Shown here: positions 27,616 to 40,290 of the stretch, piece after piece
Layout: each line of letters begins with the position of its first letter
Position numbering within the stretch: the first letter of the stretch is position 1
NCBI GenBank assembly: GCA_965112735.1
Contig: OZ218962.1
Span: 620,001-684,000 of the forward strand
DNA length: 64,000 nucleotides
Direction of reading: 5' to 3'
Source: Phaeosaccion multiseriatum
Lineage: Eukaryota > Protista > Ochrophyta, other classes
The notes under the pieces: generated by a model
Told to the model about the DNA's origin: nothing
Databases searched by the model: none
Seen by the model: the letters and a program-made list of their open reading frames with translations, nothing else
Program-made: the position numbers and the translations under genes

Positions 27616-28157
27616 CGTGTATGAGTGTGCGTCTATGCGCGTGTGTGTGTGCAAGAGTGTGGGTGCGTGAGAGCCATCTCCAGCGAGAGGGGTGTCCGAT
27701 CAGACAAACAGTCAGTCTATCCCTCCATCCCCCAACATGCTCCCATCAATACATCTACGGCCATCCTCCCATCCACTGCCATCCTCCAACCAGGTGGAGT
27801 ACAAGATCGAGCCCTCCCCCCGGTCCAGGAAGTGCGCCAGGAAGGACTGTGATGAGCTCATCCCCATGAACGTGCGTTGTGCTTTCTTGACGGTGGTTTC
27901 GGAGTCGTCAGTCAGCCTCTGACGTGACGTCAGTGCCCTTCATTTCCTACCGCCTGACCTTCTGCGTGCCGTGCTTCGCCTCCTCTTTTTCCCTCCACTC
28001 GCTCGTCACACAAACGGCTGCCCCTCCCCCCCTGGGCCGAGCAGTTTCCGAGTCTGGGTGTGGCCAGCAAGAGCAACAAGTCGCTGGCCTTCAAGTGGTT
28101 CCACCTCACTTGCCTCACGCCAGACATGGCCCGCATTGTGCAGGTGTGTGTGTGTGT

Positions 28158-28253
<96 letters not shown>

Positions 28254-30047: not shown

Positions 30048-30531
30048 TCACTCTTCTTCTTCTTCGTCCTCCTCAAGCCCCCCCTTCTCCTCCTCTGCGT
30101 CCTCCTCCCTGGTCTCGCCCTCCCCTTCCTCGTGCCCCCCTCTCCTCCTCTCCAGAGCCTTCCTCCTCCCCCACCCCCTCCTCCTGCCGCCTCGTCCCGC
30201 CACCCCATCTTCCAATACCGCTACCATCATCTCCTCCCCCATCTCCTCCTTCTCCTCTTCGTCCTCCTTCTCCTCTTCGTCCTCCTCCTCGTTCTCGCCC
30301 TCCCCTTCCTCCTGCCCTCCTTTCCTCCTCCCCAACGCCTTCCTCCCCCACCTCCTCCTCCTGCCTCCTCGTTCCCCCATCCCACCTTCCAATACCGCCA
30401 CCACCATCTCCTCCTCGATCTCGATCTCCTCCTCCTCCTCCTCCTCTTCGTCTTTCTCGTCCTCCTCCACCTCCTCGTCCTCCTCCTTACTCCTCCTCAA
30501 CCTCAGTGGTTCGTATCTCTCTTCCTCGAGC

Positions 30532-30586
<55 letters not shown>

Positions 30587-32650
30587 CCACCACCTCCTCC
30601 TCCTCATCCCTCTCTTCCTCCTCATCCACCACCTCTTCCTCCTCCTCGTCGTCGTCGTCGTCCTCCTCTTTCTGTGGCGCTACTGCTAAAGCTCCTGGCG
30701 CTGCCTGCGCCACCCTCGTGAGCGTGCCGTCATCATCGACAACGATAGAGCTTCCAATCAAGCTGCTCCCGCTGCTGCTACCCCTGCTGCTAAAACTGCT
30801 ACATATGCTGCTACCTATGCTGCTGAACACCCCCCTTTCGCTGCTGCTGCCCCTACTGGCCCTGTTGCTGCCGAGGTCCTCGCTGCTGCTGCTGTTGCTG
30901 CTGTTGCTGCTGCTGCTGCTGCTGTACACGCTGTTGCTGCGGCTTTCCCTCCTCGCTCTGCTGGTCCTCCTACTGCTGCTTCCCCTCCTGCCCCTGCTGC
31001 CATAGCCGTTGTGCCTCTTTCCGCCCCGAACCTGTCCCTTTCCCGGACCCTGATCCTGACTCTGACCCTGACCCTGACCCTGACTCGGACTCTGACCCTG
31101 GCCCTGACCCTGACCCCGACCCTGACCCTGGCATTGAGCCTGAGCCTGACCCTGAGCCTGTCTCCGCCCCTGTCCCTGACTCTGAATGGCATCTCGGTGT
31201 CCCTGCTGCTTCTCCTGCTGCTTGTTGTTCTCCTGCTGCTCCTCCTTGTTTCCATTCCCAGAAAGCAAATTCAGGAAGAACTCTTGCGGCCCTCCCACAG
31301 AGAGGCCCAGGCCCTCCAGGTGCGGTTGGAGCACCTGCAGCAGACGGATCCGAAGCTCTGCCCGCAGAGGTTGCAAGTAGGCCGCCAGCAGCTTCTCTCT
31401 CCTCCCCTTCTGGGCAGCCTTGAAGTCGTCGAAGCTGCCGTACACATCACCAGTCAGGTTGAGAGCACATGATGCCACGTGTGTGTGAGCGTCGTTACCG
31501 CAGTCCGCGAGGCAGTAGGCGCAGAAACCCGCAGCGCAGCGGCCGCACTGGAGAGCGAAGCAGTCTTCAAAGCTTACGAAGGCATACTTGCAGCGTGGGC
31601 AGGCCAGGTTGATGACCGTTTCGATGACACGGAGCGAGTGTTGACGAGCCTCTTCCTCTATGGCATCGGCCGCCGATCGTTTGGCAAAGTCTCTGTGCAT
31701 CGCCTCCAGCCTCTCCTGCACAACGAGGGGGGTCGCACGGCGAAGGAAGAGATGGCACGGGGGAGAGGGTGGGAGATAAAGCCACAAACAGGCGCCACAC
31801 AGTCCACACGAATGGCCGGCAAGAACGGCATCAATCAGACTTCGGCCCTCTCATGGACTTCTCTTATCAAACAAGCATCCTCCCCCCCTTTCCTCCTCAC
31901 CTCGTGAACAGCCTCCATGTCTTGCTCAGCCTTGCTCTTCACCCCCTCGCTCAGCGCCGTGGCGTACCCTTCTAGGCACTCGTCGCAGATGAAGTGCTCC
32001 GCGTCGCGTTGCACCCCCTCCGCTGCGAGGAAGGTCTCCCAGCAGGTGCCGCACTGGAGCTTGCGCTGCTTCACCCTGTCCTCGCCCTCCGCGGTCCTTC
32101 TGCCGAGCTCCACCAAGAGAGGGTGGGCCAGCGCCTCCGAGCAGCTCATTCTCTCCGCCGGGTCAAAGGCCAGCAGTGCAGCGAGGAAGCCAGTGAGCAA
32201 GTCCCCTCTCCTGCTGTGCGCTGCCGCCTTGTCTCTTCTCCCCCTCTCTCGCCAGCTGAGCTGCACCCCTTCTTGCAACAGCTCTTCCGCAAGCCTCCCA
32301 AAAGCGAACATGTCGACGCTTGGAGTGAGGGGGCTTCCTCGTCGTTGCCGCAGCTCTGGAGGGGCGTAGCGCAAGGTCATGTCCGTTCCCTGGATGCCCC
32401 CTAGAAACGTGGTCGAACCCACTCCCCCAGACAAGTCGTCCTCCTTGCGTAGCCCGTCAAAGTCGGACAGCACGGCGGTGCCTCGCGAGGTGAGCAGCAC
32501 GTTGGAGGGCTTGAGGTCGCAGTGCACGAGGCCGCTGGCGTGAAGGTGGTGCAGCCCGGCCAACACGTCGCTCAGTATCTGCGAGAGGCGGACGGCGAAA
32601 GGAAGCGGAGAACAGCTCAGTAGACACACACACACACGTGCGCGCGCACA

Positions 32651-32731
<81 letters not shown>

Positions 32732-35700
32732 ACACCTGCCCGCAGAAGGCCGCATTTCTGGTCGAGGCAGAGTTGGCGTCCATCCAGGCTCGGAGATCTC
32801 CTCCCTCATAGTGTGGCATCTGCAGGTAGCAGCAGCCCGCCGTGACGTCCTGGAACACAGCGCACACGCCCACGAGATTGGGGTGCCTCAGCTGGTGCAG
32901 CAGGGCAACCTGTTGGGCACGGAGTGAACGGAAGATGAGGAGGAGAGGAGAGCAGGTTCGACGTGAGTGCGTGGGGGCTCACTTCTTAGTTAAGCCTACG
33001 TCAAAGCGGTGCGTGAGAGAGAGAAAGGGAGGAGAGGGAGCGAGCGACAGGACGCACCTGTCTGTAGAAGCGGCGCATGTCCCGTTCCAGCTTCAACCTG
33101 AACCCTTTCACTACCGTCCTGCGTTGGAGAGGCACATCGTCCTGCCGCTGCTCCGTGGTGGACTCCCCTGCCTCCTCCACGAGGTAGACATGCCTTCCCA
33201 CTTGGGTGGAGAGCAGCGTCTGCTTGGCAAAGCTCTGGAGGGTCTGGCCCTCAGCCAGCAGTCCCAGGCGCCTCACCTCCATCCCGAGGGAGGAGGCGTC
33301 AATGCGCACCTCCTTGCCCCACTCGTTGCCCTCCAGCAGCAGCTCAGGGTGGTGCTCCTGCGCCAGGCGGTACAGCTTGCTCTCCTCCGCCATGATGCGC
33401 TGGCGTAGCTCCTACTTGGGGAAGGGAGCACAGCCACACAGCCGCACAGTCACACAACCAACGGGAGAGGGACAGGGATGCAGCTCAGTCATTCGCTCCT
33501 CTGCGTTCGCGGGAGGGCAGGGTCGAGCGTTTGTCGACGATGAGCCAACCCCACACGGCATAAGACGTACCTTCTGATTGATACCGGAGATGACAAGCCT
33601 CAGCCCTGCCTGCAGGCCGTCAGTGGACTCTCCCCAGCGCTTCTTCTGAGCGATGGTGAGCTTCAGCGTCTCCACCTCGTCCTGAAGGTCGTGCAGCTCC
33701 CCGCGGAGGACCTTCAGCCCGCTGTTGTCGGGAGGGTAGCACGCGCTGGACACCACCTGGAGGGCACAGGACGAGTCATCAGAGCATATCGGCACGGGGA
33801 GAGAGAGAGAGAGAGAGAAAGTTGAAACAAAAGAAAAAGTGGTAGTCACAGGACGAGAGTGAAGAAACGCCTTCTGGAAGGCGATGCTTACCTCCTGCTG
33901 CTGACCGAGCAACTCAAGGAAGGTCAGTGCCTCCATCGTCGCCAGTCTCTGGCGGTAGTGAGCGAGCAGGCCGTCCCCAGCCTCCAAGACGACTTTCAGT
34001 GGAAGGTCTTTCATCACTTCGGTGCCGCTCTCCTCGTCGTTGACCGCCGCCTGCGCCTCCGCCGCCAGTCGAATGCACCGTCGTGTGCCGCCGTCGTCCT
34101 CCTCGCTCTCTCCCACAGCTCCTGCTCCCTCCTCGACTCCGGTGCTTGTGCCTCCCAGCGACCCGAGTGCCTTCGCCAGCGCGTGCCCCAGCTCTTTACA
34201 GCGCCCGTCAGTGCTCTGCGCGAGGACAGCAAGGTCGTGCGCTGCCTCCCACTGCCTCACGGCTCGCAGCGCCTCTGTGCACAACGCCCCAAGGCCTCGA
34301 CTTCCGCCCACGCCCTCCCCCTGCCCTCCGTTCTCTTCAATCGGGATTTCGACGGCTCCTTGGAATTCCCTCAGTGATGTCACCAGACGCTCCACTTTCT
34401 CGACCTCTCTCTTCTCGGCTTCGACCTTGTCGGGCAGCCCCTCCCTGGCATTCGTCACCAGGACCTGACTCATTGCGCTGACAAAGCTCCTCCTCTCCCC
34501 GTCTCGAGCAGCGACGATCTCCTGTAAACTCTTGCCCGTGAGCCCTTTGCTGTCCACCAACACAGCCTGGGTCAGCATTGACCCCGTCCGAGCCTCCCCC
34601 GACACAGGCGGGCTCCACTTCCTCAGTACCCGCTGGTGCATCTTGAGAGAGTCCCAGTGCCCACGGGCCCGCTTTGCACCATTCACCATCCCTGCCAGAG
34701 CCTCTGTCCCGATTGTGACCCTGCCCCGCGTCCCTTCGCCTGTGGACATGGACTCAATCACCTTGAGTAGACCCCTCCAGGAGGTCGGCAGGCCGAACTG
34801 CTCTTGCACCTCTGCGCTGTGCTTGTGCTGCGAACGCTCCCTGGCGCTCGCTACCCCCGCTGTGACCGCCAGCAGTGTGCACACCCCGGAGGACAGCGAC
34901 GCTCTTTGTGCCTCCCCCAGCTGCGCCTTTAGAGACCTCACTTGAGCTCTCAGGGAGATGGAAGATGCCCTCTCCCGCTCCAGCTCGTACCAGACCTCCT
35001 CTCTCTCGCTCGGCAGCGGAAGCTCCTTTTGCCAAAGCTGTACTTTGTTTCGACGTTCCAACCTACCGGGATTGCCTGAGGAGGCCGGGCAGCACAGAGA
35101 AAACACACAGATGGCGCAGAGAAAGTGAGTCACATCACATCACACAACAGCTGCTGCGCGGACCAGGCAAGCGGGGCCTCCTCTCCCCTCTTAAGCAGCA
35201 GGGGGTTGGACTGTACGCACCCAGATATGCTCTCTCGTGTCAACTTCCACAAGACTAATCGTAAGAGAATCGTCGCTCGAGCAAGGATTTGCGGCAGCTG
35301 CTGAGGAGGCTTTATGGCCCATCTTGGGAGGGCTTACCGAGGAGGTCAGGGTTCCCGGGAGCGAAATAGGCATACGCCAATTGGGGAAGAGACCCAAGCT
35401 GCGCAGGAATGGCGCCTGTGAGCTCGTTGCCTTCCAGATTGAGAAGGAGAAGGCTCTTGAGCTCACCGAGCTCATCCGGAATGCTCCCTGAGGGGTGAGG
35501 GGGGGAGGGGGGGCGAAACCTGAGACGGGAAAGTGGGCCAAGAATCTATGCAAGCAAACTGAGCGAAATACACGGGTAAGCTCTGGATGACGCGCCGACA
35601 AGAGCGGTTACTCAAGAGCGGCTCTGGCGCGGCATGAGTGAAAGCTTCTCGTGCCCTGACCCCCTTCCTTTGGCTCGAAAAAACATACATCGTCCGTTCT

Positions 35701-36395
35701 TGCTAGCTCACCTTGCAGCTTGTTGTCCTGCAGGTAGAGATATTTCAGACCTCGCAGTTGGCCCAATGAGGCAGGTATCGAGCCTGCGGGGAAGGGTGGC
35801 ACCAATCGCGTTAGGAGCCCCTCGAGACATGCAAACTACGGCATACAGGAAGGTGGTATGACATGATGCTTATGACCCACCTGTCAACATGTTGTTATTC
35901 AGGGCGAGTCTCACCAGCGCCTGCGAATGGGCCAGCTGGGCCGGTATCGTGCCTGTGGACATGGGCAGGCCAGCACCACATGGTTAGTAGCCCCTCACGA
36001 CAGTGCAAAAAGGAGAGGTGATGCCTGTAACTGTAACGCACCTTTCAAGTTGTTGCCATCAAGCCTTAGGACTTCAAGTGCCTGCAATCGACCAAGCGAC
36101 GCCGGAATCGTGCCTGAGGACAAGCGTAAGCACCAGCAGTCGCGTTGTTAGAAGCCCCTTCGGACGAGTGCAAGCCAAAAGGGAGAGAGTCGCTAGGTGG
36201 TAGGTGCGCGATGATGCATCTCTCACCGATGAGCCCGTTTGTACAGAGGTCGAGCCATTGGACACGTCCATCCGCGCTCACATCGACGCCGTGCCACCTC
36301 GAGAAGGGGGCTCCAGTGTTCCAGTTTTCCTTGTTGGTCCATTGATACCCTCCTGTGACGTCAAAGAGAGAGACGAGCACGGCATGATTCGCCAT
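30048..36395 (-). CDS. LRR N-cap + 5 plant-type LRRs + coiled coil + Ser/Thr kinase + degenerate RING + IBR/RING2 (RBR-like) + GQ/Ser/acidic tail; multi-exon
   Basis: MANHAVLVSLFDVTGGYQWTNKENW...WHGV; LRR exons of the GxIPxxLGxLxxLxxLxLxxNxL type; kinase HPNLV, HCDLKPSNVLL, DFD, YAPPE, DMFAFG; CGTC...HFICDEC; CPRC...DCFALQCGRC...FCAYC...H. The join between LRR and coiled-coil exons (35338-35080) is not fully resolved. Confidence 0.78.
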
Positions 36396-37904: not shown

Positions 37905-40290
37905 CTATCCTCGTCCTCGACTCGACGATCTTGACGCGATTCTTTTGCTACGCTTCCTCGCGGAGGAGGAGGACGACGAGGAGGAGGAGCAGGAGGAGGG
38001 GGATGTCTCTCTGCTGCGACCAACCCAGGGGTCTATGCCCTCCTCTCCTTGGTCCTCTTGCTCGCTTTCAACCTCTTGGTCGTCCTCGCCACGGTGGTGG
38101 GGGCGACGACTGACCCGACGGTAGTCGCCATCCTTACCGCGTTTGGAGGAGGAGGAGGCGGGCGTGGATTTGGTGCTACTCCTGCCCCTAACGGTGGTCT
38201 GAGTGGTCGCCGGAGAAGGGGGAGGAGGCGAAAGAAGAGACATAGAAGAAGGGGCCCTCTCCTTGCCAGTGGCGCACTGCCTCTGGGGGCGATGGCCACC
38301 GTAGCCGTCCTGGTAGCTGCGCTGCGCCTCCTGCTCCTGGGGGTGGCCGCCAAAGAAGGGCGACGAAGACGAGGACGCTGCGGAAGTTGAACTTGAGGCT
38401 CCTCCTCCATCCGCCACGAGTGCGTTGTCGCGGAGGAGCGAAGACAGATCTCTCTCCGAGCCCTCTTTCCTGTGCCTCATTCCTGACCCGCCCCTGCCCC
38501 CTCCGCTCTCCTTCTTTCTGGAGCTACCGCCCCCCGTCGGCTGCTCTTCTTCTGCTGAGCCTGCCCGACTTTCGGTCTCATCCTCGTCGCCCCCGCCCTC
38601 CTCAGCATCCAGTGCCATCGCTTCTCGACGCTCTATGCCCCCCCCCCGTGGAGTGACGCCTGACGAGGGCCCTTCAAGCTCCTGGTCTTCGTCGCCATCG
38701 TCCACCATGGCTCCTGCCGCAGTGGCTCGAGGAGGAATGTTCTCAGCACCCCTCTCGGATCGGGGCTCGCCACGGTGGCCCTCCTCGTCCTCCCCCTCCT
38801 CCTCTTGTTCCCCGTTGTCGTCCCCTTCCTCATCCTCGTCTTCTCCATCCTCCTCTTGGTCGTCGTCCTGCTCCTCCCCCTCCTCCTCCTCGTCCTCCTC
38901 TTCCTGCTCCTGCTCCATCGGAGCCTCCCTATTCGCCCCCTCTTGGTCCCTGTGCTCGCCACGGTCGCACTCCTCCGACTCTTCCTCATCATGGACTCTT
39001 GTGTTGGAGGCCAAGGACAGAGCTGTTGCCCCTGCCCCTGCCCCTGTCCCTGGCCCACTGGTGTTGGCAGTGGCACCACCTTGGTCCGCGAGCCTGGCAA
39101 GATCTCCACCGCCCCGGGTGCTGTTGTTGTCGTCGTTCTGAGCCTCAAAGCCTTGCGGATCGTTCCCACACTCCGTCGGCGCCGCACCAGAGTCGACGCT
39201 GGCGCTGGCGTGTCCCACTGAGCTGGCCTGACGACGGCGATCGCCTCCTTCCTTCTCCTCCTCGCCTCGGATGCTCCCCCTCTCCGAGGAATCTCCGTTG
39301 TTCCAAGACCGGTACACGGCGTTGGTGGAGCCGTCGTCGTACTTATCCTGCTCCAGACCCTGAGCCTCGTACTCTTCAGCATCTTCTCGTCCGAGCCCGC
39401 TCCAGCCGGAGACGGAAGTGTCTTTGGACGACGGGGCGGCTATGCCGGTGCAGGAGCCTGCCGCTGCCTGATCACGCCACTCGTTGCTATCCGCGCCCCG
39501 ATGAGCCCGACCACCTTGACCCTCCTCCAATACCCAAGCTTGCTGGTGAGCGCGGCTCTGACTAGGGTGAACAGGCGTAGAGTTAGGTCGGGCACCGCTG
39601 CGCTGCGAAGGCCCTTGCCCTTGGGATGAGCCGCCGAGTGGTAGGGCCCTTCGCGCAGTGGGGGTTAAGTGGGCGTTTTCTGCCGCCGCGGGGAGTGGCG
39701 TGTGCTGCTTTCCAGACGTAGTCGGTCGCGTCGGCTCGGAGTCCACCGCGGTGAACACGTGCTCTACGCTCGCCTGCGTCTGGCAGAGGGCTTGATGGGA
39801 CGCGTCCGCCTCCGTCTGTGGCGACGTAGCGATGAGTGAGGCAGCGCGAATCGGAGAAGGAGAAGCGGGTGGCCACGGGGCGGCGGAGAGGGTCATTCAG
39901 TGAGTCAAAGCATTGGCCAGAAGTTGCGTACTGCCAGGTAGGAAAGGGAAGGTAATGAGGACCACTTTGACGCACGAGGCAAATCTTTGCTCTCGGACCT
40001 CTTTCCCGCCGGGCCCTGAGACGCGCGCCTTTTCTCCCAGGCCTGAGCCCACAACGCACCTGCTTCGTCGCCAAGATTTGGCATCCTTCGTTGAGCTTCT
40101 CCATCGCTTCGACAGCGGCAGACAGTGCACTGGTTAGCGCAGGGAGAACCTCGGGGGGGAGCAGGTGCGACGCCGGGATCGAGAGCGACCGTTGCTCGCC
40201 TGCTGTGACGGAAGAAGCAGCGCCACCCGCCGCAGCAGCAGTAGCCCCCGCGGCACGAGGAGCAAGCTGGAAGTGGCTTTGACTCATCAT
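37905..40290 (-). CDS. Hypothetical intrinsically disordered, acidic/Ser-rich protein
   Basis: 663-codon ORF 39896-37905 plus a probable upstream exon (MMSQSHF...ILATKQ|GTGCGT). No recognisable domain; exon join uncertain. Confidence 0.4.

Follow-up and report, generated by a model that had tools for sequence, protein, structure and literature searches.

A predicted LRR-kinase-RING1-Rcat gene family in the alga Phaeosaccion multiseriatum and a probably derived member with a damaged RING1

In the pathways known so far, leucine-rich repeat (LRR) sensors, kinases and RBR ubiquitin ligases are separate proteins, as are LRRK2 or PINK1 and parkin, or plant receptor kinases and the E3 ligases they recruit. 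LRRs fused to a cysteine-dependent E3 ligase are found in bacterial effectors of the IpaH/SspH/SlrP NEL type, which are secreted and contain no kinase. The gene we investigated is located on the minus strand, at positions 36395-30048, of a 64,000-nucleotide stretch of DNA from the ochrophyte alga Phaeosaccion multiseriatum (GenBank assembly GCA_965112735.1, contig OZ218962.1, positions 620,001 to 684,000 of the forward strand; hereafter the window, whose numbering we use for this gene). It encodes, in this order, an LRR N-cap, LRRs, a helical region, a protein kinase, the remnant of a RING1 domain, a helix-Rcat-helix module and a low-complexity tail. The explanation we consider best, with a probability of about 60%, is that this is one gene of a family with at least nine copies in the genome, which encodes cytosolic proteins composed of LRRs, a helical region, a 'DFD' kinase, RING1 and helix-Rcat, and that the present copy is a derived member whose ligase is weakened or altered.

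An initial annotation, made from the letters of the window, had proposed that recognition, kinase and ligase parts are fused in a single chain between exactly these limits. Both limits are exact: the start codon occupies 36395-36393 and the TGA stop codon 30050-30048. The gene has 11 exons with 1592 open codons; all ten introns are of the GT-AG type, their phases are compatible, and neither a stop codon nor a frameshift interrupts the frame. This model was built from stop-to-stop frames and the DNA, and the join served to count length, phases and stops; all searches for families and folds were run exon by exon. The parts of the gene are as follows.

36227..36395, minus strand: exon 1, start codon and LRR N-cap (MANHAVLVSLFDVTGGYQWTNKENW..WHGVDV..GRVQWLDLCTNGLI), ending in phase 1 at a GTGAGA donor; the N-cap resembles those of paralogs L016 and L018
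36042..36113, minus strand: exon 2, 72 nucleotides (nt), phase 1, a single 24-residue plant-type LRR (TIPASLGRLQALEVLRLDGNNLK) with a weak match to Pfam LRR_1
35881..35952, minus strand: exon 3, 72 nt, phase 1, LRR (TIPAQLAHSQALVRLALNNNMLT)
35712..35783, minus strand: exon 4, 72 nt, phase 1, LRR (SIPASLGQLRGLKYLYLQDNKLQ) with weak matches to LRR_8 and LRR_1
35338..35487, minus strand: exon 5, the final full LRR and a partial LRR or C-terminal cap (SIPDELGELKSLLLLNLEGNELTGAIPAQLGSLPQLAYAYFAPGNPDLL); LRR_8, LRR_14 and LRR_1 below threshold; 67% identity to the corresponding piece of the paralogs
33892..35075, minus strand: exon 6, helical region of 394 amino acids, with 'NPGRLERRNKVQLWQ' right at the acceptor, as in all paralogs
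33571..33756, minus strand: exon 7, second part of the helical region, 62 amino acids; in six paralogs the boundaries are kept and the introns have diverged
33058..33411, minus strand: exon 8, linker and kinase N-lobe, with Gly loop LLSTQVGRHVY, beta3 Lys (VVKGF) at 33108-33106 and alpha-C Gln (CAG) at 33060-33058
32736..32909, minus strand: exon 9, kinase N-lobe to hinge (VALLHQLRHPNLVGVCAVFQDV..YLQMPHYEGGDLRAWM); weak Pkinase match; fits the family consensus QMP.Y..G.L..W
32066..32578, minus strand: exon 10, first part, kinase C-lobe, with HCD at 32524-32516, LKPSN, DFD at 32464-32456 and PPE
31901..32065, minus strand: exon 10, last part, RING1 remnant CGTC (32053-32042)..R..H..CDEC (31987-31976), with a deletion junction near 31963/31962
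31251..31715, minus strand: exon 11, first 155 codons, helix-Rcat-helix module, with its zinc-binding core at 31601-31467 and the codon of the candidate catalytic 'DC' Cys at 31562-31560
30048..31250, minus strand: remainder of exon 11, low-complexity tail of 405 amino acids (rich in E, G, S, R and D) and TGA at 30050-30048

The LRR, helical, kinase and Cys-domain exons, as read from the DNA, form one predicted protein-coding gene. Exon 6 codes from a phase-1 acceptor, which fits onto the phase-1 LRR exons, and its beginning ('NPGRL..KVQIWQR') is conserved in the paralogs. The same colinear order, from a variable number of LRRs through the last LRR with its cap, the two helical parts, the kinase N-lobe and the kinase C-lobe with RING1 to the module, is found by tblastn on fetched upstream DNA at seven paralogous loci. 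When the copies are aligned as DNA, the exons are conserved up to their splice sites and the introns have diverged. One could assume instead that the LRR exons and the helical-kinase-ligase exons belong to two separate genes or transcripts and that the fusion is an artefact of reading neighbours together. The sequencing runs found for P. multiseriatum are all DNA, so that splicing and expression of the gene are predicted from sequence; furthermore, the intron after exon 5, if retained, would run into a stop after 8 codons, which makes an LRR-only isoform conceivable. However, exon 6 lacks an initiation codon in its 5' part, its start at a phase-1 acceptor is conserved in all paralogs, the intron between exons 5 and 6 is just 262 nt long, the order is identical in the seven paralogs, and transcripts of Euglena place LRRs, kinase and cassette in one open reading frame. 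We therefore regard the division into two genes as very improbable. The single-chain fusion has held up, with one open frame here and the same order in the seven paralogs, in Euglena transcripts and in Balamuthia gene models.

An in-frame TAG at 33414-33412 was considered as a nonsense mutation and rejected, as it is the 3' end of an intron (gtAG) in every copy. Four sequencing runs, all from one DNA sample, contain no joints between exons, and their depth is 10-15x greater over the kinase and module exons because the family is multi-copy.

Judged by sequence comparison, the LRR-kinase-RING1-Rcat architecture is not unique to this gene: it is a multi-copy family in this alga and is found in other eukaryotes as well. 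The genome (67 Mb, 22 contigs) contains at least nine close copies of the module. Transcripts P0065 and P0151 of Euglena gracilis and gene model P0006 of Balamuthia mandrillaris each encode LRRs, kinase, RING1 and module in one protein, and exon 10 is colinear with P0065 (1e-15) through the kinase and the 'HF(I/V)CDECLEG' motif. In the databases, relatives are labelled 'IBR domain-containing protein' or merely kinase. The initial annotation had stated that no characterised example was known to it. Our literature searches on LRR/kinase/RBR-IBR architectures agree to this extent, returning only reviews that are general or concern Parkinson's disease, but the design itself is shared with the proteins named above. 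The precomputed Pfam lists of P0065 and P0151 include PF27087 and PF27089; part of the family may thus already be covered by models in a newer release of Pfam.

The C-terminal Cys motif noticed in the initial annotation, CPRC..DCFALQC..C..FCAYC, is present at 31601-31467. Its cysteines are spaced C-x2-C-x9-C-x4-C-x2-C-x4-C-x2-C, as in the Rcat domains of HHARI and parkin. A profile made from nine copies of the module matched 2801 representative clusters at E <=0.001 among 1.84 billion proteins. The matching proteins are eukaryotic and vary widely in length, and the module almost always lies at their C-terminus. Over 60 diverse members, module positions C39, P40, C42, C52, C57, C65, C68, H79 and C83 are invariant and C60, C72 and H77 nearly so; the Cys at the catalytic position is invariant in 60/60 and in 77/77 diverse sequences. 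In a comparison of the profile with PDB sequences, the best single-domain match was the Rcat of CUL9 (E = 1.8e-4, in register), followed by those of parkin, ARIH2 and ARIH1, and module residue C52 aligns to CUL9 residue C2249, the catalytic Cys of the CUL9 Rcat. An AlphaFold2 model of the module (pLDDT 92) consists of a helix, a zinc domain and three helices. In Foldseek the leading matches of this model are, with few exceptions, Rcat domains of RBR ligases (HOIP, RNF216, parkin, HOIL-1, HHARI) with a probability of up to 0.99 and with E-values that are weak owing to the small size of the domain, and the nearest named clusters in the ESM Atlas are IBR_1, IBR and Rcat_RNF216. Unspecific helical matches dominate an exhaustive fold search of the PDB, in which RNF216 is found at Z 5.0-5.4. 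A homolog search with region 1-150 of exon 11 gave no match, due to a word-index limit, and one with the Euglena module gave 5 matches. The module is Rcat-like, as the initial annotation had supposed, to judge from its profile, its predicted fold and an invariant Cys where Rcat domains have the catalytic one; Cys spacing, the CUL9 profile match, Foldseek and the ESM Atlas agree on this.

In the paralogs the module is preceded by a RING1 of the C3HC4 type with the pattern C-x2-C-x13-C-x3-H-x2-C-x2-C-x21-CPQPGC, from which about 80 Cys-free residues lead to the module. After RING1 and before the module, neither this copy nor the paralogs have a Cys/His cluster that could represent an IBR domain; about 60-80 helical residues occupy this place. 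The RING1 lies immediately before the module in 102/153 representative proteins, forming a cassette of about 250 amino acids, and the cassette is preceded by a kinase in about 20/153. A model of the Euglena cassette (pLDDT 94) matches RBR ligases almost exclusively in Foldseek (RNF216, E = 1.6e-3). In structural comparison the cassette aligns with the RBR of RNF216 (Z 9.8, 192 residues) and with the RING1 domains of RNF144A (Z 9.0, 92/94 residues, rmsd 3.1 Å), parkin (Z 8.0-8.6, about 95 residues), ARIH2 (Z 8.2, 91 residues) and HOIP (Z 7.8, 80 residues), as well as with the Rcat part of RNF216 (residues 652-772; Z 6.2-6.7, 102 residues). According to these models, the family combines an RBR-type RING1 with an Rcat and has no IBR. 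The relative P0002, which contains RING1, IBR and two modules, links the family to canonical RBRs.

The RING1 of the copy in the window departs from this pattern. Ligands C1, C2, H4, C5 and C6 are present, C3 has been replaced by Arg (TGC to CGC), and a clean in-frame deletion of 141 nt (47 codons) has removed ligands C7 and C8 together with the helix that follows. The copy also differs at its end: in the paralogs a stop codon follows the module directly ('..GGPGN*'), but here the frame continues for 405 low-complexity residues.

The kinase that had been proposed is recognized by Pfam Pkinase on exon 10 with 67 bits against a cut-off of 31.7 (E = 2e-18), and kinases in the PDB are matched at ~1e-10. 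This copy, a non-RD kinase, retains the beta3 Lys (VVK), the Asp of HCD, the Asn and the first Asp of DFD. The DFD, which stands in place of DFG, marks the whole family: in 21 proteins of other organisms that combine a kinase with the cassette, conservation extends to 'GDFD', H.D, K, N and the alpha-C Glu. The kinase is therefore a distinct lineage tied to the cassette.

The two exons between the LRRs and the kinase, 6 and 7, encode 456 helical-looking amino acids that match no family. Exon 6 gave no Pfam match, had no look-alike in the ESM Atlas and showed no BLAST similarity to the Euglena protein. Neither a Roc or COR match in Pfam nor a P-loop (GxxxxGK[ST]) was found in exons 6-7, and the initial annotation was right to see no ROC GTPase; its statement that the protein has no signal peptide and no convincing transmembrane segment also agrees with what we find. 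The plant-type LRRs, the N-cap and a weakly hydrophobic stretch ('ASLSSGVCTLLAVTAGVAS') behind the LRR region could point to a membrane receptor kinase with an extracellular LRR domain, like the LRR receptor kinases of plants. Yet no signal peptide is apparent, the protein beginning within the N-cap, and this cap does not have the cysteine pairs of secreted LRRNT domains. Hydrophobicity averaged over 19 residues (Kyte-Doolittle) peaks at 1.49, short of the usual threshold for a transmembrane segment, and in all paralogs the segment has an Asp in its middle. The transmembrane reading was rejected, and we give a membrane receptor almost no credence. The preferred reading remains that of a cytosolic protein.

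The LRRs of this copy, four full and one partial, follow the plant-type 24-residue consensus LxxLxLxxNxLxGxIPxxLGxLxx. The initial annotation had recognized both the plant-type LRRs and the N-cap; the cap is encoded by exon 1, three LRRs by the 72-nt exons 2-4 and the remainder by exon 5. Pfam LRR_1, LRR_8 and LRR_14 stay below threshold on these exons because each exon was searched alone. From seven loci we collected 58 exons of the form AG|72 nt|GT, with a period of about 179 nt; the six loci that have any contain 3-19 per copy, and none occurs in the stretch fetched for L019. Over these 58 exons the scaffold positions I2, P3, L6, L9, L12, L15, L17, N20 and L22 have an entropy of <=0.3 bits, and positions 14, 16 and 18 reach 2.9-3.0 bits. 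The latter are alternating x residues of LxxLxLxxN, which face the concave surface of an LRR domain. In brown-algal LRR-ROCO genes with exon shuffling, the LRR exons are 72 nt long and nucleotides 3-71 encode the repeat (PMC11378527); the LRR exons of this family have the same length, with the repeat coded by the same nucleotides. The variable number of these exons and their variability at three alternating positions connect the family with the brown-algal exon-shuffling receptor candidates and suggest a role in recognition.

Members of the family occur in tandem pairs or clusters spaced 7-14 kb apart (G000:C1:986000-1012997, C16:2246500-2265622 and C13:280000-306724), and neighbouring paralogs differ strongly in the number of LRR exons, e.g., 17 and 7 on C1.

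Several observations weigh against the explanation given at the outset, and they concern the ligase, the kinase and this particular copy. As to the ligase, the family has no IBR, the RING1 in this copy has lost three of its eight zinc ligands, and the comparison of RING1 folds was made on the Euglena homolog and not on this gene. Pfam IBR_1 scores 16 bits on the module against a cut-off of 27, and in the profile search ribosomal zinc ribbons and the RING of RNF4 score in the same range as Rcat domains. The additional conserved C72 and H77, and the absence of a His at +2 from the candidate catalytic Cys, mean that this Cys could be a zinc ligand rather than the nucleophile. The module would then be a structural zinc-binding interaction domain with an Rcat-like fold that forms no thioester, and the protein an LRR-kinase scaffold without ligase activity; the 11 conserved Cys/His of the module, against the 8 zinc ligands and one free Cys that an Rcat needs, fit this alternative. 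However, every one of the diverse sequences compared has the Cys at the catalytic position, the module nearly always follows an RBR-type RING1, which is the element that docks E2~Ub, P0002 combines a full RING1-IBR with the module, and the fold matches are almost exclusively to catalytic Rcat domains. A mere scaffold is improbable in our view, and we continue to read the module as a candidate Rcat.

As to the kinase, the alpha-C Glu has been replaced by Gln in every copy in the genome, the Gly loop is degenerate, and DFD takes the place of DFG; the Euglena and Balamuthia relatives retain the Glu. Judged from these residues, kinase activity of the Phaeosaccion copies is uncertain.

As to the copy itself, the broken RING1, the alpha-C Gln, the degenerate Gly loop and the read-on of 405 amino acids fit decay as well as they fit a new function. 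The copy might be degenerating into a pseudogene; its frame would then be open just because the damage is recent, and its protein would have no function of its own. The 47-codon deletion and the Cys-to-Arg change wreck the second zinc site of RING1, the stop codon of the paralogs has been lost, and only three of the 72-nt LRR exons are present, compared to up to 19 in paralogs. Pseudogenes do occur in this family: at least two other copies have in-frame stops, the likely pseudogenes being L002/L018 (G000:C13:296000-306724), with a stop in the catalytic loop (HCDL*PSN) and a TGA in the module, and L008 (C13:140003-143440), with a TGA in the module. On the other hand, 1592 codons in 11 exons contain neither stop nor frameshift, the splice sites are intact, the deletion is exactly in frame, and the catalytic Asp, Asn and Lys of the kinase and all Cys/His of the module are retained. 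In addition, the kinase and module exons give dN/dS values of 0.30-0.55 relative to one paralog, which indicates constraint along at least part of the divergence. We consider decay a serious alternative, albeit not a likely one.

Given its RING1 without three of eight ligands, its short LRR array and its additional low-complexity tail, the copy in the window is probably derived: on the sequence, a derived member with weakened or altered ligase function is most likely, and a full sensor-kinase-ligase is less likely. The initial annotation had assigned recognition, phosphorylation and ubiquitin transfer to this one chain. The fusion itself is confirmed, but ubiquitin transfer by this copy is doubtful because of the lost RING1 ligands and the family's lack of an IBR, and phosphorylation shares the uncertainty of the kinase. 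The LRRs, kinase and Cys domain that had been listed are present, and the proposed coiled coil corresponds to a helical-looking region; the RING1-like motif and its damage, the 405-residue tail and the paralogs, at least nine in number, had been missed.

For the family as a whole, a role as sensor and effector may be envisaged. The LRR array would bind a variable ligand or substrate, and the helical region would mediate autoinhibition or oligomerisation. The kinase would signal, or it would switch on the ligase in cis, just as parkin and RNF216 are activated by phosphorylation. RING1 would dock E2~ubiquitin, and the ubiquitin would move to the Rcat Cys and then to the target. The copy in the window could act as a regulator or decoy, or as a ligase that depends on a partner copy. 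A more far-reaching proposal, which we put forward tentatively and consider unlikely as it stands, is that the family represents an undescribed class of eukaryotic receptor with a role in immunity or surveillance in the cytosol: a ligand would be captured by the LRRs, with their shuffled exons and hypervariable positions, the DFD kinase would then release the IBR-less RING1-Rcat ligase to ubiquitylate the captured target or the receptor, and the RING1-less copy in the window would be a regulator or decoy. If true, such a receptor would be comparable to a sensor like LRRK2 and a ligase like parkin united in a single protein.

In this genome the module also occurs in genes of other kinds: the copies L010 and L011 (G000:C13:287644-297668) and L022 (C7:1984000-1993999) are divergent (33-37% identity), and the DNA fetched around them shows no similarity to the kinase or LRRs of this gene. 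A match to a ubiquitin-like domain (62 bits, G000:C16:2386155-2386340) lies about 1.2 kb upstream of a truncated module copy, L012 (C16:2386131-2389301, with pieces at L012:1425-1662); the pair could represent a Ubl and an Rcat arranged as in parkin, or the two may be neighbours by chance. In other organisms the module ends a DEAD/DEAH-box helicase that also bears a RING (P0010, Pythium insidiosum) and a UPF1-like helicase (AAA_11/AAA_12; P0049, a Paulinella transcript), so that enzymes of several classes carry it.

Upstream of the gene, on the same strand, the window contains an open frame of 663 amino acids (37908-39896, minus strand) of acidic and Ser-rich low complexity, probably a separate gene. 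Long (GT)n/(CA)n microsatellites are located at 32620-32743, in intron 9, and at about 28100-28250; the one in intron 9 interrupts the short-read contigs of the DNA runs.

The combination of an LRR sensor, a kinase and an RBR-like ligase in one chain recurs in three distant groups, represented by this alga, Euglena and Balamuthia. Our literature searches found no paper describing the LRR-kinase-RING1-Rcat design, though it is present in many protists. The cassette of the family lacks the very domain after which RBR ligases are named; if it is active, the IBR is dispensable, and the family would offer a compact model of kinase-gated RBR activation. For annotation, the 2801 representative clusters with the module matter too, as the Pfam models used barely detect it.

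Among described proteins, the cassette is closest to RBR E3 ligases, with RNF216/TRIAD3 the nearest (Pfam Rcat_RNF216, IBR_1). The Rcat spacing and the Cys at the catalytic position are the same, and RNF216 has helices before and after its Rcat, as does the module here; the RING1 of the paralogs and homologs resembles those of RNF144A, parkin, ARIH2 and HOIP (Z 7.8-9.0). Unlike RBR ligases, the family joins RING1 to Rcat by about 80 Cys-free helical residues instead of an IBR, has extra Cys/His after the second CxxC and no +2 His, and carries the cassette fused to a kinase and LRRs; in the copy studied, moreover, RING1 is short of three ligands, and the Pfam IBR models stay below threshold. 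With the NEL effectors the likeness is in working logic only, an LRR array and a would-be Cys-thioester ligase in one chain. This is an analogy, for which homology was neither found nor claimed: the NEL ligase fold is unrelated to RING1-Rcat, and those effectors are bacterial and kinase-free.

The ROCO proteins, i.e., LRRK2 and the brown-algal LRR-ROCO candidate immune receptors, are likewise cytosolic and have an N-terminal LRR array followed by signalling domains. LRRK2 has a kinase in the chain, as this gene does, the 72-nt LRR exon structure of the brown-algal genes is common to this family (PMC11378527), and we count the differing number of repeats between paralogs as a further likeness. 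In contrast to ROCO proteins, this gene has no ROC GTPase, COR or P-loop; a helical region takes their place, and an RBR-like cassette has been added. With plant LRR receptor kinases and NLRs, finally, it shares the 24-residue plant-type LRR, the non-RD (HCD) kinase and the hypervariable alternating positions of LxxLxLxxN, but it differs from them in having no signal peptide, transmembrane segment, NB-ARC or other NTPase, and in that its ligase is built in rather than recruited.

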